DNA of 64,000 nucleotides, taken from contig OZ249449.1 in NCBI GenBank assembly GCA_965235115.1, forward strand, positions 5,642,001 to 5,706,000. Direction: 5' to 3'. Each line of letters begins with the position of its first letter. Within the stretch, counting starts at the first letter, position 1. This DNA is from Laetmonice hystrix (taxonomy: Eukaryota). Below the pieces are notes generated by a model that was not told where the DNA came from, ran no database searches, and saw nothing but the letters and a program-made list of their open reading frames with translations. Position numbers and translations under genes: made by a program. Positions 39,455 to 64,000 of this stretch are shown here, one piece after another.

Positions 39455-40627
39455 TACATCCTCTTCGACGTGCTATAAATTTACAGGACGTAAGACGTTA
39501 CTCGATAACCAGGACAGTGGTCACGTGATAGCTCTCACCTGCCCCTTTATTTGTCTTTCTGAATTAACCATATTGGACCCCTTTTCTAAATTCCTGGATC
39601 CACTATGCACCCCTTCCCCTTTTCTATAAATTCCTTAATCCCCCTCTGACGACACACGGACATTGATTTTGAAAGTGTTGGGGGGGGGGGAGTCCTGAAA
39701 CTTGCCCGATTTTTTCATTGTGATGTTCACATGGGGTGCTTTATGACTAGCAATGCCACAAAATCCCCCCGAAAAGTAGGGGGGGCGATTACCCACCCCA
39801 TGCCCCCTATTCTGATGCCACTATAGCCATGTCCAATATTCTGGACATGGCTATTTTCCTGGCTGTGCATAATGCCCAGTATTTTAAAAAGTGAATAAAA
39901 GCACGTGTATTCCAACAAATACACATGCATTGCAAAGCTTATGTATTTCAGTGTATGCTATATAATGTATTTCATTCCTCCAACAGAAAAAAATGTGATC
40001 AAAACTGGAACAATGTAAGAATATTTCTGACTCTCGCCAGGACATAGGGGCCTATACGTCTTACCCATGGAGAGTGTCTTTGTGATTGGTCGTGCAAAAT
40101 CAGGTGACTAATCACGGAGGCACCTACTGGGAAAATTTTGAACTAGAAATGTCAAATATAATAGCCAGTATGTATTTTTAATATATTTGTGAGCCTGAAC
40201 AACATAAACTCCATCCAAAATATGTCCAAAATATTAGGCTATATGCAACAAAGGGTTAGTATGAGTCATTCGCCGGGTATCAGGCCAGTACCTTGTTAAA
40301 TAAGTTTAAATGATATCGTTAGGGTTGGACAGAACCAGTTTGTGATTCTCAAGGTGCGTGCACCTATCCTGCTTTAACCAAGCACAGATTAAAATGTCAT
40401 ACATTACTAGATCCGGAATGGCCCGAACCTAGTCACATGATCTCAATATCGATCATCGGTTCTATCGACCTTTCGATGTAGACATCGCCGACTCTATCGA
40501 CTCTCAGATATTAGAAATCAGAAGGAAGAAAGGAAGGAAGAAATGAAGGCAGGCAACGTCCGTAACCTTGACATACACACACACTGGACATGCTACTGCA
40601 ACATGGGCCGACTACAATATGTTGTAG

Positions 40628-40771
40628 AAGAATAATACGGCGTCGGGATCCGAACAGGTGGCCATGTTGAAACGTTACATCGCGTTCTACTTCAACCTCC
40701 ATTATCGCCTGAACGCTGGCCAGATGTGTGTGGTACTGATGGACATGTCCGGGGCGGCCACTAGTAATATT
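40628..40771 (+). CDS. Isolated, intact-looking exon encoding part of a CRAL-TRIO (Sec14/MOSPD2-like) domain
   Basis: TGTAG acceptor, 144-nt open frame KNNTASGSEQVAMLKRYIAFYFNLHYRLNAGQMCVVLMDMSGAATSNI, GTATGT donor. The VVLMDMSG...SN motif matches the CRAL-TRIO beta-strand/DxSG motif. No other exons identified in the window. Confidence 0.5.
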
Positions 40772-41726
40772 GTATGTATTCGGTCTCAACACTTTCAAAT
40801 GACATCTTTATAATATTTTTTCTAGGAGAGGGGAAGAAAGAACGATAGAAAGCAAGAAAGAATGGGGGAAGAAAAGAACTGTTACTGCAGGATACACGTA
40901 AAATAAAACCAGATGCCTTCAGAGGTATGTATCGTGGAAGGCGAGATTAACAGTGCCTCCATCTAGCGGTGACATCCGCTCTCCATTCTCCTCGTCTTCG
41001 CCACTTGTCGTCTTGGGGCCTGCCGTTGTGTTCGTTGCTAGGTGACGTTGGTAAGAGGTTTCAGCGTTTGCCTCCAGGTGGCGAACCTGTGCCAACCCTA
41101 ACTGGAGGACCATGTTGTAAAAAGGTCCCTTCCTGTCCTGTAGCAATTCATGAGGATGCCCGTTCTGAACAATATGACCCTTCTCCAGAACCTGCAAATA
41201 TTGTTCCACATTATATGTTAATGTAGGAAGCATGAAAGGTTCTGACTGATTTTGACAATGATTGCTAGGTGGCAACACCAGCAAGTGGCTTAGTGTCATG
41301 CATATTTCTTTTTCAACGTTTGAGTCTCGTTATTATAATGGTTTCTAAATAACAGAAGATCCCTATAGCGGAATGACAGGACTACCAGAAAAACGCATAT
41401 CATATGGTGTTATCTTTCTTGAACGAGGCAACCAGATACTGAAACTCACCATAATTTTGTTATAGGTTATGACTGTAGCCAGACGGTGAGCTATGGTGAG
41501 CACGGTGTTGTCCTTAAACTGTGTACTCAGGGTCCTTTGGATGATGGAGTCAGTGCTGCAAATATCGTGATGCCATGATCAATAAAAGATACACTTCAGT
41601 TCGGGAGTGGTCTCCTTAATTAATATGTATAATGATGCCATATGTGATCAGTTGGTTCTCATTATTAGGGCGGATTATATACAAATTGTTCGGCATTTTA
41701 GCACATCCCATACTCACCACTATTTA

Positions 41727-41933
<207 letters not shown>

Positions 41934-42227
41934 TTAACGCAGACCTATTACAGTAAATGTAGGTCCGTACGGTGGATCCTCCTTGGTGACATGGGTGAAA
42001 AAATAAGTATTATTTCATTTCCTACAAATTAAATGATTTGGAAGGGGAATGGCACATTATATCCTCTTCACGGGAGAAATTGAAGGGTGAAATATGGCCT
42101 CATGCTCCTCAATTTAGGGGGTCTATATATATATACACAATGCGCAAGCCACTCTTATAAATTCAACTGCCATTATAATCATAATATTATGGGGATACTC
42201 CAATACTGCGGCACAGGAATACGTCTA

Positions 42228-42356
<129 letters not shown>

Positions 42357-42650
42357 CTATCAGTTTCTGTGAACAATCCTACGTTGGAGACCATATCGTC
42401 GCCAACCTACAACTCATCTAGATTTTTTTATGATCATGATACCCTATAATGGACGACAGAACTTGTGCAAGGGCCAGCGGTAATATGCCAACTCTTTTCC
42501 GTGCCATCCTCTGTGGACCGGGGACTTTACGTTCTATAGAATTACACGCGTTTTCCCTTTTTCCTCAGGCCTTATCATTTACTTTTTTATAATTAGTTAC
42601 CTTCCATACCTGCTGATCCCTCTTTATGACTGACTATTTGTCAAAAATTA

Positions 42651-42836
<186 letters not shown>

Positions 42837-45800
42837 CTATGATTCAAGTTCGTGAGAAGATACGTTCATTAAAGTATTAATTTCTAAAACTGCATATGAG
42901 GAGGCACGGAATTCTACATCCGGTCCCCTAGATCTTAGATCTGTGATTGGAAACCATACAATCATTTAACATTGAAAGAGCCTTGTCTGCCAAAAACAAC
43001 ATGGATTTTCCTTGAAGGTTGGGCGGGTAATTTCTCGTTCTTCCCGAACTGTGGTAGGCCTATCAGTTCTTACATAAATCAATAGTAGCGCTATACTTTG
43101 TTCAGTCCACGCTACGTGTCACCACAAATGCCCGATTTTTTGTATACCTTTTCGCCAGAGTCGACATGTAATGTTAAAGGACCTAGTGCAGGTCGAGGGC
43201 TGCCCGCATACGTCAGGGCAACGTCAGAGAACGTCACATCTCCCTTTCTCGGCCAGCCGCTAGGTGGCATCACGTCAGTGTGTTCAGGAGCCTCTTGGTC
43301 AAGGTGACAGTACTCGACAATGCGCTCAACTGACGTTAGCTTAAGAAGAGAAGTATGCGAGTTAGGAAAGGAAATATAGGAATGTGGATTTGGATTGTGG
43401 GATTCACAACGCACAGTGTCATGCAGTCAGTCTTTCCTATATTGGTCGCTGAAACTGGTGTATTCAAGTATCGACCTTATCGCGGGTTACTGGCAAATCT
43501 CAAATGAAAGGACATGTGGTCACAAACTGTAGCCCTAGATCAATGAGCCACCGCGTCCACACCAACCCCAAAAAATATCAATAACCTAAAGTGAGATTGG
43601 GCCCACTCACCGCTAGTTGGATGTCTGCGATTCGTTGGATCGCGTACTGAAGCGGCGCGGCGAGGTAGAAAAAATAGGTCAGCGACAGCCCAATAGTTCC
43701 AGCCATAGTCTCTGGAGAAATACACATTATAAATCGTTTATAAAGTGTTAATCTTGTACAAATACCATGAACTCATTTAGCCTGACTAAATACTGCCAGT
43801 GCCCCTGGAACTGTCCCTTCCGTCATAAAGCGGACGTGACTCCATGACCATTCATCACCTACTAATTTGGGATTTCTGTCCTGTTTTACTCTCCAATACG
43901 TTTCCCCCCGTTAGCCCTCTCCCTGAAAGATTACGCTCAGAGGGGATGGTCAGTAATGTGTCAACAGCTCTGCATAACCGTAATTTTTTTCACAACTTAC
44001 AATGCCCATATTCACAGATATTTGATAAAAACTTTTTCACCATAGATTCTGAACATTATTTCTCATTATTTTTGAGTACATGTAATGGACTTGCTATATC
44101 AACAGTTTTACGTTATTGACAATGCAAAGGGTACTGACGGCGGAGTTTGGTGGCTATCATGACGGCTGCATATACGGCACACAAAACAGTGCCGAGCATA
44201 TCGACCATGAAGGCCATGGAGCGTTGTGTGCTGATGTAGAGGAACCAAGCCGACGTGTGACGGTCCATGTGGGTGTTGGACTCCTCCAGGAAGTAGTTCT
44301 GGAGGCCATGTGCCCGGATGACGTGTATACCCTCCAGCATAGCCGAGAGGTGGGAATACGTCGGGCTTCGCACTGGAAGGGTTACCAAAAAAATCACGAT
44401 CCCATTGCTTTCGATAAGAAAAATAAAACTGTCACATTGTGGTTACCCCTTTTCCATTTTTTTCATTCCGTTCCCATCTCAAGCCAGATTGATGAATACA
44501 TCTTAATACTTTAATTCAAGGATCACTATTACACTTTACATTTTTCAAATATCCAATTATTAATTGAAATGGTGACATTTCCAGGAACTTTCAGATAGAA
44601 ATTAGAGTTAGGACATGGCTAGGGATAAGGACAAGTTAGGACATGGCTAGGGATAAGGACAAGTTTAGGAAAGTTTTGTTAGCCGAGGTTACAAATTATG
44701 ATCATGTTTGTGACTGAGAATAGTGACATACTGTTAGTTCCTGCAACCACATTTCATGGAAATTTGACCATGGAGGATCTACCCTTATCCTGAGGACAAC
44801 TTACATCCAGCCTCGATCCTTTTCAGCTTCCACAGACATATAAGTGAGATATACCCTGTAGTTCCAGCTAGTATGATAAACAGAACCACTGCTATTGTCA
44901 TCCATGGGTATACAACACACCCGTACAAAGCATTTTATTGAATTGTAATTCATAGTTTTTGAAAAATTAAAGTTTAAAGTTTGGGGCGTTTTTTTTATTC
45001 ACCCGATATTATACCATTTCGTCAGCATTAAAAAAACAAAGACAACTATTGTTTGGATATGATTGACACAAATAGTTGACAATCTGGACACATACCTCCA
45101 CAATAAAAAATAAGCAGTAGGGAATCCGATGATCCATAAATCCCGTGTCCCGGGAGAAACGGTTCAGAATCTGTCCTGTAAAAACATGGATTATGGCGAG
45201 CCATAACATACAGATGAGCGTTTAGAAAGGTTCCTTACTCAAATAGTTGACATCATATCACTACCATCTGGGGTATATTGTTTGGCAATTATTGAAGGTC
45301 AATTTGACACCTACCAACGTGACAAACGGGGGTTTACCCAAGTAATTAGTATTGAAGATCAATGTATGAAGGGGCTTACTGAGGTAGCTGTTTATGAAGG
45401 TCAAAGTGGGAGAGACCTACCCGAGTGACCATTTTTGAAGGTCAATGTAAGACAGGACCTACCCACAGGTTTACGTTCAAAGAAGGTCATGGGTGCCCTA
45501 AGGACGCGATCAAACATCCCAGTGTAGAGTCGTCTACTCGCCGTGACGAGTAAGAACGCCATCAGAATGCTCTGACACAATAAAACGGCCACATACAGCC
45601 AAACCATTACACTTATCGTCTGTAAGGACGCCGCCAGGGGGCGGTTCAGGGACGTCGCGTTCTGACCAGGAGACGGTCCATCTGTCCTCCTGTCAACGGT
45701 TGTGGTATGCATATTAAAGTCAAGGTAAAGTGGAAAGGAATGCTGAAATCTTAAAGCACAGTTGTGTGATTCTTGGAGTCTTTACCTATAGGCTGATGTC

Positions 45801-46114
45801 ACTATATCAATAGGCCTACTTTATGTCAGGTACATGACAATACTTTCTGTACATTATCTTGGTCAACCTTCCATTTAAAAACACGGAATAAACGATTCCA
45901 TGTGTGCCAGATTAAATGAATGAATCAATAAATTAATAAATGAATAAAAGAATGAATATGAAGAGGGGTACTTGTTGGAAGCCTCACCAATTCGACAACA
46001 TCCAGTCACTATAAACGTCCAGGCCCTGACATATAAAGATTGCAATCATGGTTGTAATAAATCGTATACAAAAGCGATTGCACTAGTCTGTGCACGAATT
46101 CTTACGAAGAGTAA

Positions 46115-46160
46115 AGGCCCAGATACACAGACCGATTTACGGCCGATTGTATCTGGGCCT
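46115..46160. mobile_element. 46-bp Harbinger/PIF-like mini-element
   Basis: 12-bp perfect TIR AGGCCCAGATAC / GTATCTGGGCCT with TAA duplicated on both sides. The empty site GAAGAGTAATGGC is present in copy B (~22110-22125). Confidence 0.8.
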
Positions 46161-46590
46161 TAATGCCATTCTATAACGGGTTACAGTAGACTGCGCATTA
46201 AATGATAATGATTATTGAAATCATGATTTCTTGCCCAAACTTCTGCTGAATCATTCGATGGGTATCTGCTGTGAGTAAGTGAAGGAAACGTTCATAGTTA
46301 ATTATGTAATATTGTAATTACTATCAACAGGAGAGTAAGACATATTTACCATTTTCCCACAGACAAGGATCAGTATAATGGGCACAATCACCAAACCGTA
46401 TCCTGCCTCAATATACCGGAAGTAGACACTAAACGAAACATTTCCGGTATGTTGCGTCTTGATCGTGGCTTCCTTTTGTGTGTCACACTTTCAACCGAAA
46501 TCATTAAAATTAGTAACTTTTAGAGAACATTATTATATATCTATCTGCATTATAAATTTAGAATTTAATTCCACAAGAAGAGAAGAGTAA

Positions 46591-46772
46591 AGGCCCATGT
46601 CCACATAGGCGATTGTCCTTGTGACGTCCATGCGATTTTGACATCACCCTTTTACGTTAGGCCTACTGTGATTTTGAGAAAGATTTTTTTAACGAAATTA
46701 TAGAGAAATTCTACCATTAGATCAATATCGTATGGTCGACGCAAGGACAATCGCCTTAGTGGACATGGACCT
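46591..46772. mobile_element. 182-bp Harbinger/PIF-like MITE
   Basis: ~30-bp TIR AGGCCCATGTCCACATAGGCGATTGTCCTTG / CAAGGACAATCGCCTTAGTGGACATGGACCT, flanks TAA / TAT. Absent from copies A and B. Confidence 0.75.
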
Positions 46773-47421
46773 TATTGCCTAAGATGTTAGGCTTGCAAAT
46801 GAATAAAGAACTTGATGACACTATGAACAAAAGTGATAAAAATGAACGAATAATTTCTGTTTTAAGGATCATCGTAAAAAAATCCCCCCCCCCCAACTCA
46901 CGGAATGCTGGTAATTCTGTTGTAATCCGATGTTATCCAGACCGTCGTTCAGTGTCACGGGACAGTTAATTGTACTGTAGGGTTCCTTGACATCAGGGTG
47001 CCCAAAATTCATCTCAGATGTGTTTTGTATTTGAGGGCGGTCTATATCCGGGTCAGAGGTCATATATCCGGTCCCTGGGTCGTCTTCATAATCCTGGAGA
47101 TGTATATGGGGTGCCACTGAGGCAAAACTCCCCACTGCTACAACGGCACCCTTAAATATATTTACAGTCAATTGTTAGTGTGTCTATTCTTCCTGTCGTA
47201 GTAACCGGGTAAATAATTTAATGTATAAACTCCTGACATTTTCACTCACCTCATCCATGACGATAACCTTATCGACGTACTTCAGGTACTGAAGTTGGTG
47301 GGTGACCAGGATCCTTATCTTGGATTTCAGCATCCCACAGATACACCTGGGGGTCATTTGGTGCATGAGAATGGTAACATTATATTGGAGTGGGCATACT
47401 TTCTTATACTGGGCCAATTAC

Positions 47422-47714
47422 CAATCTAATTAAAATTAGATCTTGGTATTCCGCGTCTCTCTCGGCTGTGTCAGTGCTGCTGCGCTCCATACCTAGATCT
47501 AAGGACATCCCATTAGGGGTCACCTCAGGTTGACCTCTGGATTCAGCCAATCAGCGAGTCGCCTACGAAATCTTCGGTGTGCGCTCGTAGGCATTTTGAA
47601 CGGCACACTTGAATCTGGGTCAAAGGGCAGCCTGAGGTGACCCCATACGGGATGCCGTTAGATCCTAGTATGGAGCGCATGCGAAATAACTAAGACCTAA
47701 TTTTAATTAGATTG
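47422..47714. mobile_element. 293-bp foldback MITE with 10-bp target-site duplication (Mutator/foldback-like)
   Basis: TIR CAATCTAATTAAAATTAGATCTT / AAGACCTAATTTTAATTAGATTG (22 of 23 match) and long internal inverted arms. GGCCAATTAC is duplicated at 47412-47421 and 47715-47724 and is single-copy in A and B. Confidence 0.85.
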
Positions 47715-49600
47715 GGCCAATTACTTACCGATGGAATATGACATTTCCGACTTTACTGTCAACGGCACTGAGAGGGTCGTCTAAGAGGAAGATGTTGGCA
47801 TCATGGTACACAGCCCTGAGGAAAAGAGAAGATTATATTTATATGGTGTTATACTCTTGATCTGTCCCACATAATTTAATTACAAAAAGATAAAACTACA
47901 CCAAATCTCCAACGTGGACGTGGAGTATCAGATTCTAATGCTTCAGGAATTGGGGGATTTGATAGCGCTGGATATTGTGCGGTATTTTGAGAACAGCGAT
48001 CTTCGAGTTGAGAAACAGATCATGACTGGGGGTGTCAACTCCCATCTCGGCCTCAGCCGGATTCGCGTCAACAACCGCGGACCTAATCAATTTTCTTTAA
48101 TACTAAGTACCTTGCTAGGTTGATCCTAGCCTTCTGACCTCCACTCAAGGAGAGTCCTCGCTCTCCTACCGGTGTGAGGTCACCTTGGGGAAATTCATGC
48201 AGGTCCTGGACAACAGACACAGAGGAAAGACATCAGTGAAGAGGGCCATTGCTGCATGGTCACGTACCCACGAAATTTGGGGGAAGGGTTTGAAGTCGGA
48301 GACTAGATAGAGAAAGGGATACCCCTTTTTGGGGACGAGGTCTGTGGACCGGGAGGAAGGGATGAGGGAGGGTAATATACTTTTAGTTCTTATCCCTTTG
48401 GTGGATTACCCTAATTACCAGTTTGAGATAAGATAAGGTTTTATATTTTTTAGGGAGTATCTTCGAGCATTGTACGTATTTCAGTATGGCCTTGGTGATG
48501 TATGTTATTATGCAAATAAATAAGGTGAGGTCAAATATGGAATTCACCACATTCAGAGCGCATGCGCTGATGACTGCCTTGTACGTGTCAGCGTCCATGT
48601 TTTTCCCCATGAGTATGTTAGACCTGATGGTATCTGAGAGTATCCACGACTCCTGAGGAACATACGCCACCGACCCGTTAACATGGAGCTCTCCACCTGT
48701 GAGGTCCAACTCGTTCAGGATGGCCAGGAGTAATGAGCTCTGAGAGACAAACCGTTGAAAGGATGAACACTTATTGTTTCAACCAATCACGCGCGGCTAG
48801 GTAATCAGGGCCGCCTGCATGTGATTGGCTTCATTCATTGTAATAAATATACTTTTCATGTAAAGGTAATCAATCACCCTAGGGCCGCCGAGTTTTGTCG
48901 AAGCGGTGTCCCCATCTCCTACGAATCCGCGTATTTCAAGCTTACCTGATCTTGAATCTATCCCACTGGACTGATAACACATTCTATCGTAATCATAACA
49001 TTGTTGTGCTAGGTCTGTTCTTGATTATGAGCCATAATGAGGCGATACATCCCATATTTTTCATCTCAATGGACTGAGAACCTAGAACACTGCCGCCCTA
49101 ACCATGCTAACGGTCATGCGGTCGTTACTCAGCAACGGGATTGGGCGCATGCGCTGCCTCGCACTGCTCCGCCCGCCCTCCCCCCCCCCCCCCCCAATCA
49201 AAATAGGGGCATGATTTGATTCGCGTGCTCTCGTCTCTAGCCAAATAGGTGAACGCTTAATTAATTAATTAAAAATATTGTCGATATGGACGCGCCATGG
49301 TACCAGACTGCTAGAAACCCCTTAAAATAAGTGTTTTTACCACACTAGGAGTACTTACCTTACCAGCCCCCACGGGGCCAACCACGGCAATCAGTTCACC
49401 CTGAAATATTATTATGAGCCAAATGTTGAATAGGCCTAGTGCAGTTTACTTAAAGCGCTTGTGCAAAGTTTCCACTGTATAGGCTGGTTTATTTACCTTT
49501 TCCAACGTAAACCATCATCATAATAATATCCTTTAGTAATTGATGTAATCAGCAGCACGTAATTCTCATAATTAATGAAAAAACGAATATTAGCTGCAAC

Positions 49601-50933
49601 ACCTCGTAGTGATTCCTCCCTGTACTGTTTGGCCTCCCTGTACCGTCTGCTTGTATACAAGAGTAGCCAGTAGTATAGGGACGCCTTATGTTTCATGTTT
49701 CCATGCCTTTATTGTCCATGAGGCAGGCCATACGTTTCGTCTATCATCTATACTCCCATCTAACCTGTGTCCCCTACAGACCATCTGTAAGCGTCCGACA
49801 ACGTTGTCAGGTCGTCCCAATGACTGTTTGCCGTCAAGGTTTAGTTAACAACGGCAAATGACGCTGTACGCCTTTTCTATATCAGATATCCCATCGCCAA
49901 GTAACAAACAAACAAAGATGACACAGAGATGCTGCAGGCAGAAAACACCAGGGCGGCGGCGGTGGCGTTGACTGCACTGCCGCCTTCCGGCCAGCGGTGG
50001 AATCACCAAGTACACCTGGCCGGGATGGCGGGTACCTGTGGCTCTGAGGCGAGAGACAGGTTAAAGCAATGATAATCGAAAATTGCTACATTTTTGATAC
50101 GTCAAATTGAAACTACGCCCCCAAAAATTATGATTCTTAGGCCAGATGTATAACTGTCAAACGTATAGGTCTCGTACGTTCGCTACAGTTAAATGGTTGT
50201 GATGTGTACACTTTCCATTTGAGTATCTTCTCCAGATTTTAACATTAGATGCTCCTCGCCTGTACATTTTATTTCCACTACCTCACTGTAGTGTTTGCAT
50301 GGCTGGAAGGCCAGTCGGCAAGATGTAGGGATTTCTCACTCTACTGAATGGCTTCCCACCGGCACTGCTTGGCCCCACAGTGTATACTGTTTGGCCTCAC
50401 TGTAGATCTACTCTTTGGCCTCACTGTAGTGTTCGCTGGGGTGCTAGACCAGCCAGTATACCTCGTAGCGATTCCTCCCTGTACTGTTTGGCCTCCCTGT
50501 ACCGTCTGCTTGTATACAAGAGTAGCCAGTACTATAGGGACGCCTCATGTTTCATGTTTCCATGCCTTTATTGTTTATGAGGCAGGCCATACGTTTCGTC
50601 TATCATCTACTCCCATCTAATCTGTGTTCCCTACAGACCACCTGTAAGCGTCCGACAACGTTGTCAGGTCGTCCCAATGACTGTTTGCCGTCAAGGTTTA
50701 GTTAACAACGGCAAATGACGCTGTACGCCTTTTCTATATCAGATATCCCATCCCCAAGTAACAAACAAACAAAGATGACACAGAGATGCTGCAGGCAGAA
50801 AACACCAGGGCGGCGGCGGTGGCGTTGACTGCACTGCCGCCTTCCGGCCAGCGGTGGAATCACCGCGAACACCTGGCCGGGATGGCGGGCACCTGTGGCT
50901 CTGAGGCGAGAGAAAGGTTAAAGCAATGATAAT
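49601..50933 (+). repeat. Two near-identical ~475-bp direct repeats (49601-50076, 50460-50933)
   Basis: Both run from CCTCGTAG.GATTCCTCCCTGTACTG to GAGGCGAGAGA.AGGTTAAAGCAATGATAAT. The second ends in an (ATG/ATA)n tract. Confidence 0.9.
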
Positions 50934-52118
50934 GATGATAATAATGATAATGATGGCCATCTATTCTAGGACCTAGATAGACTAGGCCAATAGGTTCTGA
51001 GAATATAAAAATTGAAGAGACTCCTCCCCCAATCATGCAGACTTTAGGCGGTCTCTAGGCTATAGCTAGGCAAGCTCGGCCCTACAACTATTAAAGCTAG
51101 GATTGTAGGCCTAAAATAAAAATGGAATCGATTCGTGGTTTAAAGTCAGGGCGATTTTTGACAGCTTGGTTCGTTTTGGCGGAAGACTATGCCATGGAGC
51201 TCTATGTCTGAAAAATCGAATGGCAAGGCCAAGGTTGGCAAGAAAGAGCTGGACGTTTCTCAGAGCTTTAAAATAATCTGTAAAATTTAAGGCTGGAATT
51301 ATAAACATTTGAACATTTTCTGTCTTCTATTGTATTTTGGCCTCTTAAAGGGGTCGTAACTGGCCAGTAGGGGTTCGCCAAAGAGGGTTCATAACCCACA
51401 TGGTAGATCTGAAGCATGATTATCCGGTGTACCATATCCTAATCTTCTTACGGACTACACCTAAGTCATTTCTTTCTTTTTCCTACTTTTCCCTTCCTTA
51501 CCTTGCTTATTTCCTTATATATTTTTATGCGCATTACTTGCTGTATTTATTTGCCTATTAAATTATTTCTTTATAGGCGTTGTTGTATGTTATTTGTTCA
51601 TTTATTGTCAATTCATAGTTTTAGGTGTTCATCTCCTAATGTTCTTACGGGGTCCTGTCTCCAAGGAGACAACGCCTATTGTTTCGTCAAAAATAGGGGC
51701 GCGTTTCAAGAAGAATGGAAAACTTGGACAACGACATCATGTGAACGACTTCCTTGTGGCGAAGACATGGCTACAGTGCTACCTAAATTTATATAGCGAT
51801 GACTTGATTAAAACAATATATCGCAAGGACAGACATCTTTTGATCTGTGTGGCGTTTCCATGTATCAACGTCATTTTAGGCTTATGGTCAAAATAATAAT
51901 ATTGAATTGGACCCCTGTTTGGTCATGTGACTTTTTGGACACGGAGACCGTATCCAAGATACACAAACCCCGCAAGGAGTTCGTAGATGGCGGACAGCCT
52001 TTCGGAATATCTCTGAGTATTCGTTCAGCTAACCCAATCTACATCGACAAGCGCACTTAAAAAGTTCTCTGCTCGGTAAAGCGACTTTCGAAGTACCGCC
52101 ACGGCGAACTTTGTGAAA

Positions 52119-55100
52119 ATGGAAGGAGGTTTTGGACCTTCGGGAAGCGACCGAACCTACGCGGACCTGAAAGATCTCGAGGCTCGCGGCTACCGTCTGA
52201 CAGATGCTGATGAAGATGATGTCCCCGAGGTGGAGGGTGTGACTGTGAGAAAGGGCGTCGTCATGCCTGCCAAGGCCCGGTCTCACGGGGGCATCAGGGA
52301 CTGTGTCGACCTCCTCGGGCACACAAGGGTAAGTATATATAATTATATCCCGTAAAATCTAAGTTAGAGCTTATACTCTAGATAATGACGTCATGACGGA
52401 AAGCGCAGAATGTAGGTTGGGGAGGATCGCAGCTACGTCACGCTGTCAGAACTCGAGGTTGGCCTTGTTGTAATTTACTCGGAAGAGACGTCATTTCCAG
52501 CCCCCCCTAAACCTAACTCAAGTGTTTGGCTTGGAGTCCAGACTTTAAATCACTTGAACAAACAGATTTCGTTTGGCAGCCGTCTTCGATCTTTGACTTT
52601 GCGTGGGCCGTGGCTGAAACTGAGTGAAAGTGAAACGTGAAAGTTTGGAGTTGGAATCGGAGCCGGAAGAAGACTAACCCAAGGCCAAACCACATAGCCC
52701 CAATGATATTAGATTAGAAGGATTATATTTAAGTAGATCTAGGGTATGTCTACTCTAAGCCTAGTTAATCCTAATGCTACTTTGGCTGGCGGAGAGCCAT
52801 GGCCGCATCATGTTGGGCGGTGTGCATCACTGCATGCGGTGTCCACGTGATCGGAGCATGACAGTTGGCCATACTCACCAGGTGGCGCCATCGACAACTT
52901 GGCCGGAAGTGACGAAATGACAGGCTTCTTGGTACTTGGTGGGCAGGGACTCGGGTTGTGAAGTGGGGATTTGTACTTTGTAGGGGCTCGTGGGCCCCCT
53001 CTAATCTTATTTATTAATTTTTAGTTATAAATTAAGTAAAATGTATAGATCTAAGGGGTAAATTTGTCTAAGACTAAGTCAAGAGTTAAACTTAAACTTT
53101 AAAGTCATAAATGATACAGAGAGATACTCTCTACTACGCCTATCACTATCAGTATCATATCCCTATCAATCATGCTATGACTTGAGACTGCCTTTGCCAT
53201 AGCTAGGCCTATGGCTAAGCCTATGGCATAGCTATGGCATATGCCATGGCTATGGCTAATCCTAATACCAGAAAATTTGGTATTCGAATTTAGAATTTAG
53301 TAATGCTGGCCGCCTAGTACTAGAATAGAAAATGTTAAGATTTATTTTAGACTTGGCCAATTACGTGGTGGTAATTTAAATGACTGTAATTTAGTGACAC
53401 TACAAAAATTAAAATATACATTATATTACTCCTTTCATGGATGGTCAACAAAATATTAATTCAGAAAAAAAGGTACGAAAAAAACCGCAGCAATAGAAAG
53501 AAAAAAAGAAAAAAAAAAAAGAAAAAAGAAACAAGGATATAAGATAATACGATCTCTAAAGGCTTCATTAAAAATAAAAAAAAAACAAGGAACTTTTGAC
53601 TTGAGCTCCCATCCTTTTTTGTTGTTGGTGATGGTTTTGATGTTGTTTTTGTTTGGTCCTAATAGGTCCTATACGATCATGAGTAAAAAATAAATAGACA
53701 AATGATTTTTATTTAGAAAGAAACGTTTTCGGCAGAAAATACATTTTACATACCAGAAGATACGTACCCCTTCCTAATGGAATTGTTCATACCTGGAAGT
53801 TGAAGTAAAATATTTAATTAAAAGTGAATGAAAATTATATTTTCTTGATTGAACTTGAATCTGAAAGTCCTGAAATAGTTTTCAAATAATCCTGATCTTG
53901 ATCAGTGGGAACCCTGTAGATAAAGATGCAAAAGTAAAGGGTGAGCCCTAGTATAAAGAGTGTTTTCATTTTAGAAAATACTACATTCGTTTTTGCTAAT
54001 TTGGGTAGGGTACAGCAGGGTTGTAGCCAGAAATTTTTGTCAGAGCGGTACTGAGCGGCCGACGCAGGTGGCCGTCTTTCTAGGGGGGTCCCGAGGCACA
54101 GAGCCGTTGTGCGGGCGAAATATTAGGGGGGGGGCGTGAACAGTGGCGTAGCTAGACTTTTTTTCCACAGGGGGGGGGGGGTAAGCACCTAAGATTTCCG
54201 AAATTTTGTAAGGAAAATAAAAAGTCTGCCAAAAAAACAAACAAAAAAAACAAAAAAAAAAACAGGGACATTTTTACCAAATACAGTACAGCGAATTTTA
54301 CCGAATTGGAAATTGGGGGGGGGGGCAGCCCCAACGGGCCCCTATGGGCACGACGGCACTGGGTCGGGCCTTAGGAATACCTCAACTTGGGAAAACCGCA
54401 CTGTAGTTTGGTTTCATTTGATGATCTAGTGTCCCAGATGGCAAATTTCCGAATTTTTCATTTTCCAGAGCCAGGGGGGCAATTGCCCCCCTGCCCCCTG
54501 TAGCTACGCCACTGCCCTTGAACATGCTTAAATACCGAATCGAGAATACTCCTCAAAAAAAAAACTGACAAGCAAAAAAAAAAAATTGTTTTTTTTTTTA
54601 ATTTTTGAAAATTTTCAGCGCGGCGGAGGCGCTTGTCAGCGCGGCGCTGCGCTGCGCCCCGTGTCCGCGCTTTGGATACAACTGCTCAAAAAATCTTAAA
54701 GCATGGTGTTATTTATTAGGACAGCCTTGGTGCACAGATCCCCCCCCCCCCCCCGCCCCGAGGGCGCAGAGTGAAGCCTGAAGGGACAAGGGCTAAGTTG
54801 ACTCAGTCAGTGTCTCGATCAGTAGACCATATCTTGATCTTGATTAATTAATTAATTTCCCATTTTTCAGATCAATGTCCAGGTGGCCAATAACTTAGCT
54901 ACCCCTGTGCCATACCTCAGTGAGGTCTTCGAGCCTGATAAAATCCACGTCAAACGTACTCAGGTGCATCCTAACATCGTAAGTAGTCAATGGGAACTGT
55001 CGTAGTGAATACTGCCAACAGTTTAGTTTACCTGGTGTTTTATCCTCTTAAAGCAAAATCGTAGGGAAAGTCCAAAAAAACGGAAAACGGAAAAGTAGAT

Positions 55101-58100
55101 TTAGGTGACCATGAAGCTGGAAAATGGTACGTTAAACTTAAAGGTTTTCCTTACCTAATCAATCATTGTTCCATGACAGGCGGTTCTGTATGACGTCATT
55201 GCGTCCAAGGATGGTTACCGGACGTACGTCATTCAGGAGGCCCCAAGGGGTGACGATGCCATGACGTATATGAAGAAGATGAAATGCGCTGAACATAAGG
55301 CTCGCGAGGTCTTTGCTCAGGTCGCTGAGGCCATCTTCCATTGTCATAAGGAAAAGTACGATCATGGGTACGTTAGAAGTTTGGTCTTTGGTTTCAATGA
55401 AACTTCAGGGGGAGAAGTCCTACTCCTCCTATTCTCCCTTCTTCCACGTTTCAGCGCCCGTAATTTGAATAAGGCTGATAGGTCAGAGGTTACTCTTTCT
55501 TGGTTCCCGCTTTTGTTTCGTTTTCAATACTCCTGTAGAAACAACAAAAAATAAAGAGTCTCTAGAGCTCTTAACTGGACCTCAGGACAGAATTTAGGAT
55601 AAGTTTTTGGTCCTAAGGAAATTGGCTAGGATGTAAGAAGACTTTATTTTGAACATTTCAGCGAGGTGCGCAGTGGATCTGTGCGCATTGATAAGCATGG
55701 AGATGCTAAAATCCTTGGTAAGCATGAATTAATTATTTATTTAGTTCGCATTTATTATCAATCTTTTGTGTTCAGCTTCACAAAGCTGAATTTATTGACA
55801 GCTAATTCATTTAAAATAGTTAAATACTCTTAGCTACGGTATTTATAATCTAAAAAAATGTATACTATTATAAACCGTTTCTTTTGAAAGAATATTAGCC
55901 CTCAAACTTACTAGGTTGTAAGGTAGAATGAGGTCTTATTGGTCAACCTAAAAATGAGCCAACGATCTGTACTGAGTAAATCTGAAACATGTTAAAGGTT
56001 AAAATTATGTCTTTATACTAAAATTCTATAGCTTGGACAGTGAAGTAAGGTAAGACATAATGAATGCGTGGTGTGTGTGATTGGAAAGATTAGTTGGCTT
56101 GTTGTATGTGTATTTGTTTGAAAGAGTCCATTTTGATCATTTACTAAAAATTGAAATTTTAATTTTTCGCATGTTGTCTTGGTAGAATTAATTCGTTAGA
56201 ACTTACATATTCGAACGTTACATATTCGAATAGGTGTGCACATTTTATTTTCTCTCTCTTTCTCTGCACTCTAGAGGTGGCCTCACTGTTAGTGTTAGTG
56301 TAGTTGGCTAGAGATCCTGCAAATTGTACAAACTAATTACTAGAAATAGCAGAAGAAACGTTTTCCACAATTTGGCTCATCACTGAGTATTATAATGAGT
56401 TGATTATTGTAATGTTCAGTTTCAACCAGAATAATGTACCTCCGTCACTGTTTTTGTACAATTTTCTTCTTGCAACCCATACAAAATCATGGTCTCGTCA
56501 TAATAATACCACCTTTCTCACAACCTGGTGAACTGACTGAAATTGGAATAAAAAAGCAACAAATCTGTGATAAAATTTCAAGGGACAGCTGGAAAGTATA
56601 TTTGGCATTTGATTTGATATTGAGATTAAAGTAAAATTTAAAATAATAATAAAAAATATTGTTCACCTCGGAGGGGGTGGGGGGGGGGGGCTGATCGACA
56701 GAGACAATGACGAGCCTTTAATAGCTTCGCATAAATATGTCTTTAAGCCCATTAAAGACGTTTACTTAGTTGTCTGGAGAGGGTGACAACAATTTATTTA
56801 TATTCGGTCTTTAGACTTGGGACTGTCACGCAAGATCAATCCCAAACATTGCTACGGCAGGAAGATCCCACCAACTGCTCACGATATGTTCAACCTGTAA
56901 GTAGTTACCACTTTCAACGGGCATTATCAACTGAAAAATGGCAAAGTATACGTTTGTCATGATTCTGTTAAGAACTGGAGAAGAACTTTTATTTGTTGGT
57001 AGTTGTAATGTAAGTTACCCACATGTTTTACTCATCCCTATGGAGTTACCCACTTCCTACATAACAATGCTACATGCTACATAACAATGATGCACACAGT
57101 TTATAATTGTCATCACTGATTAACAGGATGATGATGTTTTTGTAATGTGGTATAGGGGTGTCCTGCTCTATGAGCTCCTCCACGGCTGTCGCCCGGGTCC
57201 AGGAACCCTTGATGAGCTGGAGCGCAGTCTCAACCTCAACCACATCAAGATCGGCCCAACTGTGCCCAGAGGTAACGATTTCACTCAGACTAACATTAAC
57301 AACAATCTTTTCTATTACATTTTAAAAGTATTGGGAAGGGGTATGCATCGTTATATTATAAGCCTGTTATATATAAGCAGATCTATATAGGCATGCTTAT
57401 TGAGTAGCGTGAAATCTGAGGTGCGTTTCACAACCTGTCATTCAGAAACTTCTTACAAGTGTCATTAACATTACACAGGGTTTGGACAGGTCCTTGGAAG
57501 TACTTGAAAGTATTTGAATTTTATCATAGATTTTTCATGGATTTTAAACATGCATGATGATCGGAGCCCGGAAACGTCTATGACTATAAGTGTCCCCTGG
57601 TGACTGAGCCCGGAAACGTCAATTACAGACGTGAGCCGATAGATGGCGCCAGTCTATGACTATAAGTGCCCCCTGGTGACTTGTAGACTTACTATTGCAG
57701 CGGCCGTCCAGCTGATGTACAGGCTCATGGATCCAGACCCCATGAGGCGCCCCCTGCCGGATGACGTCCGCAATGACCCCTGGATGCTCGGAGTGCCAGA
57801 GGGCACCGCCATCTTCCGTCAGAGGAAGAGGGTAATTCTCCCAAAGCTGCAGAAGGGTACCAATGACCTGATCAAACTCCGCCAGATGGGCAGCGTCCAA
57901 GTCGGTGAAGCCCAGAGCATGCCAAACTGTGCCATGCCTGAAAAACGTAAGTATGACTTATACATTACACAAATACACCAATATTAAGGGTTTGGCATCT
58001 TCGTGCTTTTCTTCTTCATCTTTTTCATTTTCATTTTCTTCTTGATTTTCTTTTTCTTCGTTTTTCCCCCGTTTTCCCCCCATTTTCCTCATGAATTCTT

Positions 58101-60297
58101 CTTGTTCTTCATATCCTTTTTTCGCATTTTTCTTTTCTTCGTCTGCATTTTCCTCTTCATTTTCCTCCTTGCACTCCTTGTACTCCTTGCCTCCTCCGTC
58201 TTATTGGTTTTCTTGTTAGAATTTAGAACTTGGTCCTCTCATTTCCAGCCACCGAAAACCTTGCTGCCAAGAAGCCAAAGCAGGCCAAGCGCAGGGTTGA
58301 AAGCCCAGACAGTGGTGACGAAGGTGAACTCCTTGACTGTTCCCTCACCGTGCGGGGAATCGCAAAGCCAAACCCCGATAGGCCCAAGTCCAAACTTGCC
58401 CGCCCGTCTGCATCCAAGGAAAATTGCAAGCAGCAGGTTTGTGTACTTCTGGACTTGCAGTCAAAGTCAGGATATGGTTGTTGAACTTTCTTTCTGCTGC
58501 AGGTGACTTACATAGATCGATGTGGTTCCAAATGTTTAAAATGGGAATCATGGGATTTGCTCAAGTTTATATTACTAACGAACCTGCTGTTGGTCAAATG
58601 TTCTTTGCTACATACAGACAAGTATGTGAAATACGTAATTTCTAATCACATACTTTTCCATATATCTTAGGTGAAGGAAACTCCTGCCAAAGTGAAGGTT
58701 GAACGCTTCCAGTTCATTGCCCAATCCCGTGGCTCACCGAGCCCAGCTGAGGTAATCGAAGAGGACATCAAACCCCGCAGACCACCTGCCAGGCCTGCTA
58801 GGATCATCAGCCCTGCCCTCTCCGTCGGTGAGGCCATCCTAGAGAGGGTCAAGCGCCCCAAACCATCTGCCAGGGCCGCTGGGACCATCAGCCCCGCCCT
58901 CTCCGTCAGTGATGAGCCAGAGAAGGTCAAGACCCCCAAACCTCCATCCAGGGCCGCTGGAACCATCAGCCCTGCCCTCTCCGTCAGTGATGAGCCAGAG
59001 AAGGTCAAGACCCCCAAACCTCCATCCAGGGCCGCTGGAACCATCAGCCCAGCCCTCTCCGTCAGTGGATCCATCCCAGACGAGGACATGCCCACTAACA
59101 TCGCGAGTCCTCCACAGAGTGCACGCAGCACCTCCGCTGAACCAAACGGAAAGGTACCCAAGTCTTTCGTAGTTCCAAAATGGATTCCTTTGTACGTAGT
59201 ATAGAAAGAAGATCTTTAGAAGTTGATGGCAAACCATTACTTTGTCCTCAACCTTAGATTGAGACTGACTTGCAATATTTGTTGGTTGATCGTGAGCAGG
59301 TTGTCTTTGTCGAGGATGCCAAGGAGCCCAAGAGGCAGTCAGTCGCTGATCTCATCAAATCGGGCCATGTCCCACGTCCGCCAAGTGAGTTTCCCCAAGT
59401 ATCACCAAGAGCAATCACTTAGACCGACTAACTTATACTTGCCCCCTCAAAAAAAAAAAAAAAAAAAGAAAGACCAGATGGTCCTCAGAGTATAAAGATC
59501 AGAATTATTGATTAAATTGATTGAGAATTTACTGTATGCGCCAAAACTGGGCTTGATTTGACCTCCCCCTGAGAGGTTTCCCTGGGTATGCTGCTTGTAT
59601 ATGTAGATCATGTCATACCAGACCAGACGTCTACCAGAACGGCCTGATAGCCTCATTGTGAGGAAGCATAAAAACACCATTCCCACTCGTATAGATGTTA
59701 AGAAGAAAAGTATATTATATAAATGTATTAAAAGTGATATTCTATTGATATCAGCTGGCAAACGCCCAGAAAACACCGGCCGTCCGAAACGCGTCCACAA
59801 GACGATCGCGCTGCCCACTGTGGCCGTCAAGGAGAGTGAGCGATCTGCTGCTGTAAGTTTTACTCTAAATAATCACTCAGTAACATAACAACAACGTTCG
59901 TCTGGGAAATTCCATTAAGTAAATGACATGTTTATAGTTTAGTTCCCATAGTTGATACATTTATATATTAGAAACTATTTTATGTACACCAACGAATCTT
60001 GAAAAAAGAAATGTGTCCTAATCCCTACTGGACACATAGGATCGGTATTGTATTGTTCCAAATCAGTTGTTCAAACCTTAGAATGAAGACATCCACCTTA
60101 ACAAATGATGTATCCAGGGACATCTTAACGCTACCCCTGACATCAATTTGAGATGTACTTTTTACTGCACCCAACAGCCGCCCACCAAGATCGCACGCTC
60201 ATCCGTCACCGGACCGCCATCGGTCCTGAACATCCGACCCCCAAAGTCTCCAAAAAGGAAGACCAGCCTGAAGCTGCCAAAGATCCAGATTGACTAG
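52119..60297 (+). CDS. CAMK-group (TSSK-like) protein-kinase-fold protein, predicted pseudokinase, 659 aa, with repetitive Pro/Lys/Ser-rich tail
   Basis: 12 GT-AG exons with matching phases: 52119-52328, 54871-54978, 55180-55367, 55662-55717, 56815-56896, 57156-57271, 57701-57946, 58249-58436, 58671-59153, 59300-59384, 59755-59852, 60178-60297. Total 1980 nt, open to TAG; start context GAAAATGG. Kinase landmarks: HPNI, AREVFAQVAEAIFHCH, AKILDLG, DMFNLGVLLYELLHG, RLMDPDPMRR...DPWM. Confidence 0.8.
54141..54514. mobile_element. CAGTGGCGTA-type MITE within a cluster of poly-G/poly-A MITE fragments in intron 1 of the kinase-like gene
   Basis: 14-bp TIR CAGTGGCGTAGCTA / TAGCTACGCCACTG. Confidence 0.65.
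58788..59070 (+). repeat. Coding 78-bp (26-aa) tandem repeat, ~3.5 copies
   Basis: RAAGTISPALSVSDEPEKVKTPKPPS is present twice nearly identically, with a diverged first copy and a partial last copy, inside exon 58671-59153. Confidence 0.9.
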
Positions 60298-60729
60298 TGA
60301 AGTCAGTCTCCGAGAGGGAGGGGGGACTCCGCCGTGGTCGTAAGGAGATCATTGCTGAGTCATATCATTGTATATATCCACAAATCTCAAATTGTCAGGC
60401 AATATATGGAATGCATTTGCTCATCAACCAACATCATATTTCGTAGCAACAAAAAATCTAAGTTAGTATGAAAATGGTAATGAACATCATCCCTCGTATA
60501 AAAATAATCATGATTTACAAAACTCAAAAATGGTTATTGTAGTTCTAAAGACCAGCATTTAGAATATCAAACTTGTATTACTTGGGACAGATAAGTATAC
60601 AAACCTAAAAAATGATCATCGTAGAAAACCAAACAGATCAAGGATCATTTTAAACAGTATAGTTATGGATCTCAACAATGGAAGTTGTAGGTAACCCTTC
60701 ATCGATTGTAGTGTAGAACAGTGTACGGA

Positions 60730-63700
60730 CCTCAAAATGGTCCTTGTTGAAGCCTACCACCAAGTATGAACCAGGTGAACAGTATGGTACAGATAGATCT
60801 CAAAACGGTCCTTGTTGAAGCCTACCACCAAGTATGAACCAGGTGAACAGTATGGTAGAGATAGATCTCAAAATGGTCCTTGTTGAAGCCTACCACCAAG
60901 TATGAACCAGGTGAACAGTATGGTACAGATAGATCTCAAAACGGTCCTTGTTCAAGCCTACCACCAAGTATGAACCAGGTGAAGAGTATGGTAGAGATAG
61001 ATCTCAAAACGGTCCTTGTTGAAGTCTACCACCAGGTATGAACCAGGTGAAGAGTATTGTAGAGATGGATCTCAAAACGGTCCTTGTTGAAGCCTACCAC
61101 CAAGTATGAACCAGGTGAAGAGTATGGTAGAGATAGATCTCAAAAGGTTCTTCTTGAAGTCCACCACCAAGTATGAACCAGGTGAAGAGTATGGTAGAGA
61201 TAGATCTCAAAACGGTCCTTGTTGAAGCCTACCACCAAGTATGAACCAGGTTAAGAGTATGGTAGAGATAGATCTCAAAACGGTCCTTGTTGAAGCCTAC
61301 CACCAAGTATGAACCAGGTGAACAGTATGGTACAGATAGATCTCAAAACGGTCCTTGTTGAAGCCTACCACCAAGTATGAACCAGGTGAACAGTATGGTA
61401 CAGATAGATCTGAAAACGGTCCTTGTTGAAGCCTACCACCAAGTACGAACCAGATGAACAGTATGGTAGAGATGGATCTCAAAATGGTCCTTGTTGAAGC
61501 CTACCACCAAGTATGAACCAGGTGAAGAGTAAGGTAGAAATAGATCTCAAAATGGTCCTTGTTGAAGCCTACCACCAAGTATGAACCAGGTGAAGAGTAT
61601 GGTAGAGATGGATCTCAAAACGGTCCTTGTTGAAGCCTACCACTAAGTATAAACCAGGTGAAGAGTAAGGTACTCTAGATGGATCTCAAAACGGTCCTTG
61701 TTAAAGCCCACCACCAAGTATGAACCAGGTGAAGAGTATGGTAGAGATGGATCTCAAAATGGTCCTTGTTGAAGCCCACCACCAAGTATGAACCAGGTGA
61801 ACAGTATGGTAGAGGTAGATCTCAAAATGGTCCTTGTTCAAGCCTACCACCAAGTACGAACCAGGTGAAGAGTATGGTAGAGATAGATCTCAAAACGGTC
61901 CTTGTTGAAGCCTACCACCAAGTATGAACCAGGTGAAGAGTATGGTAGAGATAGATCTCAAAACGGTCCTTGATGAAGCCTACCACCAAGTATGAACCAG
62001 GTGAACAGTATGGTACAGATAGATCTCAAAACGGTCCTTGTTGAAGCCTACCACCAAGTATGAACCAGGTGAAGAGTATGGTACAGATAGATCTCAAAAC
62101 GGTCCTTGTTGAAGCCTACCACCAAGTATGAACCAGGTGAACAGTATGGTACAGATAGATCTTAAAACGGTCCTTGTTGAAGCCTACCACCAAGTATGAA
62201 CCAGGTGAACAGTATGGTACAGATAGATCTCAAAACGGTCCTTGTTGAAGCCTACCACCAAGTATGAACCAGGTGAAGAGTATGGTAGAGATAGATCTCA
62301 AAATGGTCCTTGTTGAAGCCTACCACCAAGTATGAACCAGGTGAACAGTATGGTACAGATAGATCTCAAAACGGTCCTTGTTGAAGCCTACCACCAAGTA
62401 TGAACCAGGTGAACAGTATGGTACAGATAGATCTCAAAACGGTCCTTGTTGAAGCCTACCACCAAGTATGAACCAGGTGAACAGTATGGTACAGATAGAT
62501 CTGAAAACGGTCCTTGTTGAAGCCTACCACCAAGTACGAACCAGATGAACAGTATGGTAGAGATGGATCTCAAAATGGTCCTTGTTGAAGCCTACCACCA
62601 AGTATGAACCAGGTGAAGAGTAAGGTAGAAAGAGATCTCAAAATGGTCCTTGTTGAAGCCTACCACCAAGTATGAACCAGGTGAACAGTATGGTAGAGGT
62701 AGATCTCAAAATGGTCCTTGTTCAAGCCTACCACCAAGTACGAACCAGGTGAAGAGTATGGTAGAGATAGATCTCAAAACGGTCCTTGTTGAAGCCTACC
62801 ACCAAGTATGAACCAGGTGAAGAGTATGGTAGAGATAGATCTCAAAACGGTCCTTGATGAAGCCTACCACCAAGTATGAACCAGGTGAACAGTATGGTAC
62901 AGATAGATCTCAAAACGGTCCTTGTTGAAGCCTACCACCAAGTATGAACCAGGTGAAGAGTATGGTACAGATAGATCTCAAAACGGTCCTTGTTGAAGCC
63001 TACCACCAAGTATGAACCAGGTGAACAGTATGGTACAGATAGATCTTAAAACGGTCCTTGTTGAAGCCTACCACCAAGTATGAACCAGGTGAACAGTATG
63101 GTACAGATAGATCTCAAAACGGTCCTTGTTGAAGCCTACCACCAAGTATGAACTAGGTGAAGAGTATGGTAGAGATAGATCTCAAAATGGTCCTTGTTGA
63201 AGCCTACCACCAAGTATGAACCAGGTGAACAGTATGGTACAGATAGATCTCAAAACGGTCCTTGTTGAAGCCTACCACCAAGTATGAACCAGGTGAACAG
63301 TATGGTACAGATAGATCTCAAAACGGTCCTTGTTGAAGCCTACCACCAAGTATGAACCAGGTGAACAGTATGGTACAGATAGATCTGAAAACGGTCCTTG
63401 TTGAAGCCTACCACCAAGTACGAACCAGATGAACAGTATGGTAGAGATGGATCTCAAAATGGTCCTTGTTGAAGCCTACCACCAAGTATGAACCAGGTGA
63501 AGAGTAAGGTAGAAAGAGATCTCAAAATGGTCCTTGTTGAAGCCTACCACCAAGTATGAACCAGGTGAAGAGTATGGTAGAGATGGATCTCAAAACGGTC
63601 CTTGTTGAAGCCTACCACTAAGTATAAACCAGGTGAAGAGTAAGGTACTCTAGATGGATCTCAAAACGGTCCTTGTTGAAGCCCACCACCAAGTATGAAC

Positions 63701-64000
63701 CAGGTGAAGAGTATGGTAGAGATGGATCTCAAAATGGTCCTTGTTGAAGCCCACCACCAAGTATGAACCAGGTGAACAGTATGGTAGAGATAGATCTCAA
63801 AATGGTCCTTGTTCAAGCCTACCACCAAGTACGAACCAGGTGAAGAGTATGGTAGAGATAGATCTCAAAACGGTCCTTGTTGAAGCCTACCACCAAGTAT
63901 GAACCAGGTGAACAGTATGGTAGAGATAGGTCTCGAAACGGTCCTTGTTGAAGCCTACCACCAAGTACGAACCAGGTGAAGAGTATGGTAGAGATAGATC
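60730..64000. repeat. 68-bp tandem repeat array (~48 units, continues past the window end) with higher-order duplications
   Basis: Unit GATCTCAAAACGGTCCTTGTTGAAGCCTACCACCAAGTATGAACCAGGTGAACAGTATGGTACAGATA. Period 68 (e.g. 60791 to 60859). Rare variants recur at offsets of 884 and 1975 bp. Confidence 0.95.

Follow-up and report, generated by a model that had tools for sequence, protein, structure and literature searches.

We describe here a gene in a 64,000-nucleotide stretch of the Laetmonice hystrix genome (assembly GCA_965235115.1, contig OZ249449.1, positions 5,642,001 to 5,706,000 of the forward strand). This whole stretch is called the window, and positions are counted from its first letter. 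An earlier reading of the sequence, the original prediction, had proposed that the gene encodes a selected, non-catalytic kinase homologue. The analysis below leads us to consider it likely that the gene is real and codes for a 659-residue protein of the CAMK group, a catalytically dead pseudokinase whose fold is under selection and which has decayed furthest within a family of 11 loci.

The gene and its paralogues

Scripted splicing of positions 51800-60900, carried out independently of that prediction, gave 12 exons between 52119 and 60297 on the + strand, with GT..AG ends on every intron, consistent phases, and an open spliced frame of 1,980 nt that codes for 659 amino acids and a stop codon. 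This reproduces exactly the intact 12-exon, 659-residue model proposed earlier, with its frame and splice phases kept. The span quoted with that proposal, 52119-57946, takes in exons 1-7 only, the kinase-like part of 335 residues; exons 8-12 lie further downstream (Table 1).

Table 1. Exons of the gene and the conserved element upstream of it
Feature	Position	Strand	Content
conserved non-coding element	51950-52060	+	~60-170 nt upstream of the ATG; from an alignment of the upstream regions of 8 family members
exon 1	52119-52328	+	70 codons, phase 0/0; start codon; family-conserved N-terminal segment (GP.G ... DLE..GY ...); without GxGxxG
exon 2	54871-54978	+	36 codons; beta-3 strand and alpha-C region; INVQVAN against V(I/M)(I/V)K.ID in paralogues
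exon 3	55180-55367	+	beta-4 to alpha-E; last residues His-Gly at the place of HR in HRD
exon 4	55662-55717	+	remainder of the catalytic loop, beta-7/8; (G)EVRSGSVRIDKHGDAKIL against DLHSN... in all paralogues
exon 5	56815-56896	+	82 nt; DLG and truncated activation segment
exon 6	57156-57271	+	alpha-F and alpha-G (GVLLYELLHG...)
exon 7	57701-57946	+	alpha-H/alpha-I (LMDPDPMRRP, DPW), then family-conserved post-kinase segment (LP.L ... GS.(V/I)G ... (I/M)P)
exon 8	58249-58436	+	start of the tail (basic, rich in Pro/Ser), weakly homologous to C11a
exon 9	58671-59153	+	tail; tandem 78-nt repeats
exon 10	59300-59384	+	tail; splice sites kept in twin
exon 11	59755-59852	+	tail; splice sites kept in twin
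exon 12	60178-60297	+	stop codon, after the C-terminal end KIQID

Six-frame searches of the species' own genome (627 Mb in 35 contigs, the window lying on contig C19), with exons modelled by homology at fixed phases, found 11 loci with exon 3, this gene included, plus matching exon 1 and exon 7 hits. All family loci, the 10 paralogous ones and the gene in the window, agree in the boundaries and phases of their seven kinase-domain exons. Also common to the family are an N-terminal extension and a post-kinase segment (residues 286-335 of the window protein), and its catalytic loop, HRDLHSN, is one residue shorter than that of SNRK and carries His for the loop Lys. The whole family is without GxGxxG. 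In other respects the members fall into three grades of motif loss. Seven loci on C10, C12, C13, and C5 retain the beta-3 Lys, HRD (HRN in 2/7), DFG, and APE. In two loci on C11, the Lys and DFG remain, HGD stands for HRD, and 10 residues are gone, APE among them. The third and most degenerate grade comprises the gene in the window and a twin, with Gln, HGE, and DLG at these sites, no catalytic Asn, and an activation segment that is 17 residues shorter.

In a maximum-likelihood tree, the gene and its twin form the sister group of the C11 pair (C11a, C11b) with a support of 99/100 and a long stem. The twin lies at C19:9.85 Mb, 4.2 Mb from the gene; it is ∼96% identical and keeps all 12 exons and splice sites in an open 685-codon frame, its extra length being one additional in-frame 78-nt repeat in exon 9, the sole exonic indel between the copies. 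Exon 1 is matched at 99% in the twin and at 50% at C11:28.74 Mb. Apart from these two genes, no member of the degenerate clade is intact: in C11a, exon 7 carries a frameshift and no exon 1 lies within 14 kb; in C11b, exon 6 is shortened and exon 7 ends after 37 residues; and a third copy on the same chromosome as the gene (C19c, C19:24.26 Mb) consists of exons 5-7, without exons 1-4. We note separately that one copy of the motif-bearing group, C10a (C10:2477400-2495399), has its exon 1 split by ∼3.5 kb of inserted sequence and is probably disrupted too. This 11-copy family is undescribed so far: a literature search on TSSK, pseudokinases, and invertebrate and annelid kinomes returned no description of such a family, and the graded loss of catalytic motifs, the twin, and the broken relatives are additions to what the original prediction had noticed.

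One alternative is a wrong gene model, in which other exons restore the motifs or the 12 exons span more than one gene. In its favour, exons 8-12 are only weakly homologous to anything outside the twin; however, the shared boundaries and phases of exons 1-7 across 10 paralogous loci, the shortening of exon 5 by an internal loss between conserved anchors, and the retention of all 12 exons and their splice sites in the twin argue against it. A pattern scan of the introns for alternative canonical exons found no open stretch with VAIK, HRD..N, DFG, or APE patterns, so that no such exon is present there. We regard a wrong model as very improbable.

Kinase homology and the active site

The spliced protein was examined exon by exon with Pfam and with family profiles run against solved structures. 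Exon 3 alone matches the Pfam family Pkinase (PF00069, E-value 1.1e-4, 22 bits, profile positions 65-118), a score below the whole-domain cut-off for what is a 62-residue piece. The family profile of exon 3 gives Snf1 as its best solved match (E-value 4.7e-10), followed by SNRK, MARK, and AMPK, at chain positions ∼79-136; that of exon 6 matches CDPK (E-value 5.9e-4) and PKC at the alpha-F position (chain positions ∼193-234); and that of exon 7 matches CaMKI (1a06, E-value 2.9e-6, chain positions ∼249-323), with an alignment that extends weakly into the regulatory segment of CaMKI. The family profile of exon 1 found nothing significant among solved structures (MKK7 N-lobe, E-value 1.3). Across profiles, the top solved matches were Snf1, SNRK, MARK, AMPK, BRSK, SIK, CaMKII, and CaMKI. 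Within its own genome, the window protein is 29% identical to a SNRK-like exon (L012), and the elements from alpha-C to alpha-I are collinear; in the ESM Atlas, exon 3 of a paralogue falls in generic "protein kinase domain" clusters only. Because the exon-profile matches are collinear along the kinase domain, the predicted protein is a CAMK-group kinase homologue: its similarity to the eukaryotic protein kinase superfamily runs in order across both lobes, and the nearest characterised kinases are those of the CAMK/CAMKL type. The resemblance is not due to chance.

The best solved relatives of the family profiles, the CAMKL kinases (Snf1, SNRK, MARK, AMPK alpha) and CaMKI, are active enzymes with GxGxxG, VAIK, HRDLKxxN, DFG, and APE, whereas the window protein keeps only the DFG Asp. 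The N-terminal extension, the post-kinase segment, and the tail are the family's own. Columns were assigned by a MAFFT alignment of 10 paralogues and the canonical CAMKL exon from the same genome (the SNRK-like L012). At the VAIK position the protein reads INVQVAN, and Gln74 occupies the column that holds Lys in SNRK and in 9/9 of the other aligned paralogues. The catalytic loop reads H-G-E-V-R-S-G-S, so that HRD has become HGE and the catalytic Asn is gone. DFG has become DLG, with Asp188 retained and Phe replaced by Leu. At 82 nt, exon 5 falls short of the 133 nt that it has in the seven APE-bearing paralogues, which corresponds to an internal loss of 17 codons of the activation segment, APE included. 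In the C-lobe, the motifs DMFNLGVLLYELLHG, LMDPDPMRRP, and DPW are retained.

The SNRK-like and paralogue alignment thus agrees with the original prediction on NVQVAN without its Lys, DLG, the short APE-less activation segment, and the preserved C-lobe motifs; two of its claims need rewording. The catalytic loop had been aligned without gaps as HGEVRSGS, with Asn replaced by Ser. The loss of the Asn stands, but MAFFT places a one-residue deletion in the loop, common to the whole family, so that the Asn column holds Gly174 and not the Ser175 of the ungapped reading; the Asn is gone in both. An acidic insert had been said to replace GxGxxG. The motif is indeed absent, but the site of the former Gly-rich loop is ambiguous, lying either at the acidic PEVEGV (GQMSYG in paralogues) or ∼20 residues later at KARSHGG, where MAFFT puts it. 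Neither of these two candidate stretches contains GxGxxG, and the sole exonic match to the pattern is GGFGPS at residues 3-8, ahead of the domain.

A pseudokinase is a kinase fold without at least one of the beta-3 Lys, HRD Asp, and DFG Asp, and the window protein has lost both the beta-3 Lys and the HRD Asp. Among the features required for catalysis, the Gly-rich loop, the beta-3 Lys, the HRD Asp and Asn, and APE are gone, and the DFG Asp alone remains. The alignment supports the prediction of a kinase domain incapable of canonical catalysis. Some kinases without canonical residues still catalyse, and an atypical active kinase with substitute residues (as in WNK or CASK), for instance one in which Glu170 acts as the base and another strand supplies a Lys, is conceivable in that the DFG Asp is kept in DLG, Glu stands for the HRD Asp, Arg takes the place of a catalytic-loop residue, and the N-lobe segment offers several Lys/Arg (VRKG, AKAR). 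Against it, five features have gone together (the Gly-rich loop, the beta-3 Lys, the HRD Asp, the Asn, and APE with 17 activation-segment residues), and the active-site segments evolve as if unconstrained on the lineage of the window gene only, as detailed below. We think that an active enzyme of this kind is highly unlikely.

Evidence for selection on the gene and its twin

Against the nearest paralogue clade, represented by C11b, the ratio of nonsynonymous to synonymous divergence (dN/dS) of the window gene is 0.34 (bootstrap 0.23-0.46) at a dS of 0.94. When dN is split with four outgroups, the ratio is ∼0.40 (0.27-0.61) on the branch of the window gene and 0.26 on the C11 branch, values that presume the same dS for each branch. 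In a frame this long, 0.1 neutral substitutions per site would create a stop with a probability of >0.99. Between the gene and its twin, the exons differ at 20/1,980 sites (1.0%) and the aligned introns at 123/4,788 (2.6%; Fisher P 2.4e-5), which makes the exons ∼2.5-fold better conserved, and nonsynonymous divergence in the kinase part is 0.30 of the intron rate (Poisson P 2.7e-4).

The changes are also unevenly placed. In 99 columns, C11 agrees with at least 70% of the seven motif-bearing loci, which allows the ancestral residue to be inferred. Of these columns, 19 lie in the beta-3, catalytic-loop, and DFG segments, and the lineage of the window gene changed 12/19 of them but 11/80 elsewhere (odds ratio 10.8, P 3e-5); the C11 lineage changed 0/19 of those active-site columns. 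Decay confined to the active site would fit a selected pseudokinase, whereas uniform decay is expected of a dead gene, and we regard the former as supported. In line with the original prediction, which had called the protein both selected and non-catalytic, the dN/dS of 0.34, the lower divergence of exons than of introns, and the concentration of changes in the active site point the same way; a selected, non-catalytic kinase homologue is backed by four independent signatures and is supported as a prediction on that basis. The contrast between an active site in decay and a constrained remainder of the domain tells a selected scaffold from a dying gene without recourse to expression data.

In the window, the duplicated segment begins at 50977, 1.1 kb upstream of the ATG, spans the gene, and ends in a 68-bp satellite that starts ∼430 nt after the stop codon and occupies 60731-64000, running beyond the window (48 copies inside it; 94% matches between copies). 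The same satellite array lies behind the twin (C19:9858709-9866732, ∼8 kb) and marks one end of the duplicated segment; it may have given rise to the duplication. In principle, the second copy could be a misplaced haplotype, an assembly haplotig. We do not favour this explanation: the assembly is gap-free within 44 kb of the twin, and the loci are unrelated upstream of 50977.

Several points weigh against our reading of the window gene, in addition to the equal dS that the branch values presume. After the duplication, the ratio of nonsynonymous to synonymous changes per site (pN/pS) is 0.59 for the whole frame (20 changes) and 0.89 for the kinase part alone, where 6 changes are nonsynonymous and 2 synonymous; neither ratio is distinguishable from 1. 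The three closest other relatives (C11a, C11b, and C19c) are damaged, so that the clade does yield dead genes. Very large protein collections hold no orthologue of the window gene and hence allow no cross-species dN/dS. The public sequencing runs that contain the stretch are three, from one sample, and consist of genomic DNA contigs with no splice joints and no transcript evidence. Finally, a non-catalytic mechanism is something that we only infer. Of the 38 variant letters that could be compared in the DNA runs, 36 match the twin, which makes them unusable as polymorphism data.

A rival reading is that of a pair of young, unexpressed, unprocessed pseudogenes whose frames are open for lack of time. 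In its favour, the pN/pS of 0.59-0.89 on 20 changes is not significantly below 1, both frames would stay open by neutrality alone with a chance of ∼0.2 at 1.3% change per copy, all three sister-group members are broken, and no RNA run was found. What such a history does not explain is the pattern of change, in which several catalytic residues and their motif neighbours were altered but only 14% of the remaining family-invariant positions; neutral change over a short time cannot produce this and also spare 12 exons and 22 splice sites. The dN/dS of ∼0.4 on the long branch, the ∼3-fold slower change of exons, nonsynonymous sites especially, than of introns between the twins, and the conservation of the upstream element (described below) also speak against it. 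We judge young pseudogenes to be unlikely and take the window gene to be probably functional and lineage-specific.

Lineage restriction had been suggested in the original prediction, and the gene does look lineage-restricted: the collections gave fragments of one family member from one other assembly. Exon 3 searched against 1.84 billion proteins had 6 weak matches, of which one is relevant (P0006), an open reading frame (ORF) call in the ENA assembly ERZ26222911 that continues through a family member's exon 3. Exon 1 had no match in the homologous-protein search, and the exon 7 family alignment matched P0007 only, on the same 196,551-bp contig. P0006 and P0007 are fragments of one motif-bearing-type family member (C13b type) on a single contig of ERZ26222911. 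In this member exon 3 ends in His-Gly, not His-Arg, which suggests that the organism may have lost the HRD Arg independently.

Proposed role, known counterparts, and surrounding sequence

The history that we propose begins with the window-gene lineage, on which the active site was dismantled (Lys to Gln, HRD to HGE, loss of the Asn, DFG to DLG, shortening of the activation segment) while the remainder of the fold stayed under purifying selection. Later, the gene was copied, together with 1.1 kb upstream and the downstream satellite, to a second site on the same chromosome, with both copies remaining intact. Gene structure, motif losses, family membership, duplication, and signs of constraint are shown by the data above. 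The protein itself would most likely serve as a binding module that carries out no phosphotransfer: the kinase-like domain and the conserved post-kinase segment may bind partners, perhaps those of the motif-bearing paralogues, with which it could compete or associate, and the long basic Pro/Ser-rich tail may be a docking or substrate region.

This tail, residues 336-659 (324 residues), is basic (isoelectric point 10.3) and rich in Pro, Ser, Lys, and Ala, with 12 Ser/Thr-Pro sites and several Lys/Arg clusters. Exon 9 contributes 3.8 tandem units of 78 nt (26 amino acids) at 58768-59067, with the motif GTISPALSVS, as found with Tandem Repeats Finder. Outside the twin, similarity to the tail is weak and confined to C11a, and Pfam gave no match in it.

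In CAMK-group pseudokinases such as Tribbles 1-3, STK40, CaMKV, and CASK, a bilobal domain without ATP-binding or catalytic residues has been kept as a protein-binding module, often with a regulatory C-terminal segment after the domain. The window protein would represent the same general solution, with a sequence kinship no closer than the group level. Its truncated activation segment and 324-residue basic repeat tail set it apart from these known cases, and the signatures of Tribbles (SLE for DFG, DQxVP, HPW(F/L)) are absent from the 659-residue model in a regex search. STRAD-LKB1 and HER3-type systems offer an analogy only, that of a dead member inside a family whose others keep Lys, HRD, DFG, and APE; in contrast, the activity of the motif-bearing paralogues here is itself uncertain. 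To the TSSK kinases, likewise of the CAMK group, the original prediction had noted a short N-terminal resemblance (..GY.L.., then an SY-containing loop; GQMSYG in paralogues), which may be of the TSSK type; its suggested link to sperm is pure conjecture. No TSSK is among the 60 best solved-structure matches to the exon profiles, and mammalian TSSK genes are active and intronless, in contrast to the seven kinase-domain exons of the window family.

In animal kinomes, about one kinase in ten is a pseudokinase, and lineage-specific cases are common, so that it is no surprise to find one here. The clean case that it presents is a single genome with paralogues at several stages of catalytic decay. 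A further reading, which we hold to be rather doubtful, is that the family forms an undescribed lineage-specific CAMK branch with an atypical, conserved active site and that the gene and its twin are dead paralogues that regulate or compete with the motif-bearing members. If so, one family would hold a stepwise series from full motifs through HRN and HGD without APE to a fully dismantled site. If the motif-bearing paralogues turn out to be active although they have no Gly-rich loop and their catalytic loop is shortened, the family would also interest kinase enzymologists. For genome annotation, its 11 loci, at least 3 of them broken, merit curated models.

The conserved element upstream of the gene (Table 1) is a family-specific block of ∼90 nt with the near-invariant core CCCGCAAGGAGTTCGTAGATGG(C/T)GGACAGC; it also carries a YY1-like ATGGCGG that doubles as an upstream ATG. 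Between the window gene and paralogues with saturated synonymous sites, the block keeps 79-83% identity, and a genome-wide DNA search placed it in 7 places only, all directly upstream of family members. We take the block to be a putative promoter or 5′ untranslated region. An Rfam scan of 50500-61000 matched no family. We also considered the block as coding sequence and rejected this, because indels shift the frame among paralogues and stops occur in the window copy. Several members carry ACGTCA or TGACGTCA, candidate motifs that resemble a cyclic-AMP response element, ∼200-250 nt upstream of the ATG (e.g., at ∼51865-51880 and in C13b), as seen by eye in the upstream alignment.

Other sequence in and around the gene is repetitive. 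Within intron 1, positions 53874-54848 are repeat-rich, with runs of G and C at the flanks, and partly absent from the twin; the summed contig depth of this segment in the DNA runs reaches up to ∼10x that of neighbouring sequence, which indicates a high-copy element. Further upstream, 40375-49455 has an inverted copy, 92-97% identical, at C19:8661634-8670521, which is neither the gene's own locus nor that of the twin but a third site on this chromosome. The upstream stretch contains an ORF (40919-41299, - strand) whose translation presumably resembles the C-terminal end of an ABC transporter, judged by eye. A segment of ∼1 kb at 32850-33890 has 99% identical copies on contigs C4 and C7 and is probably a young mobile element.

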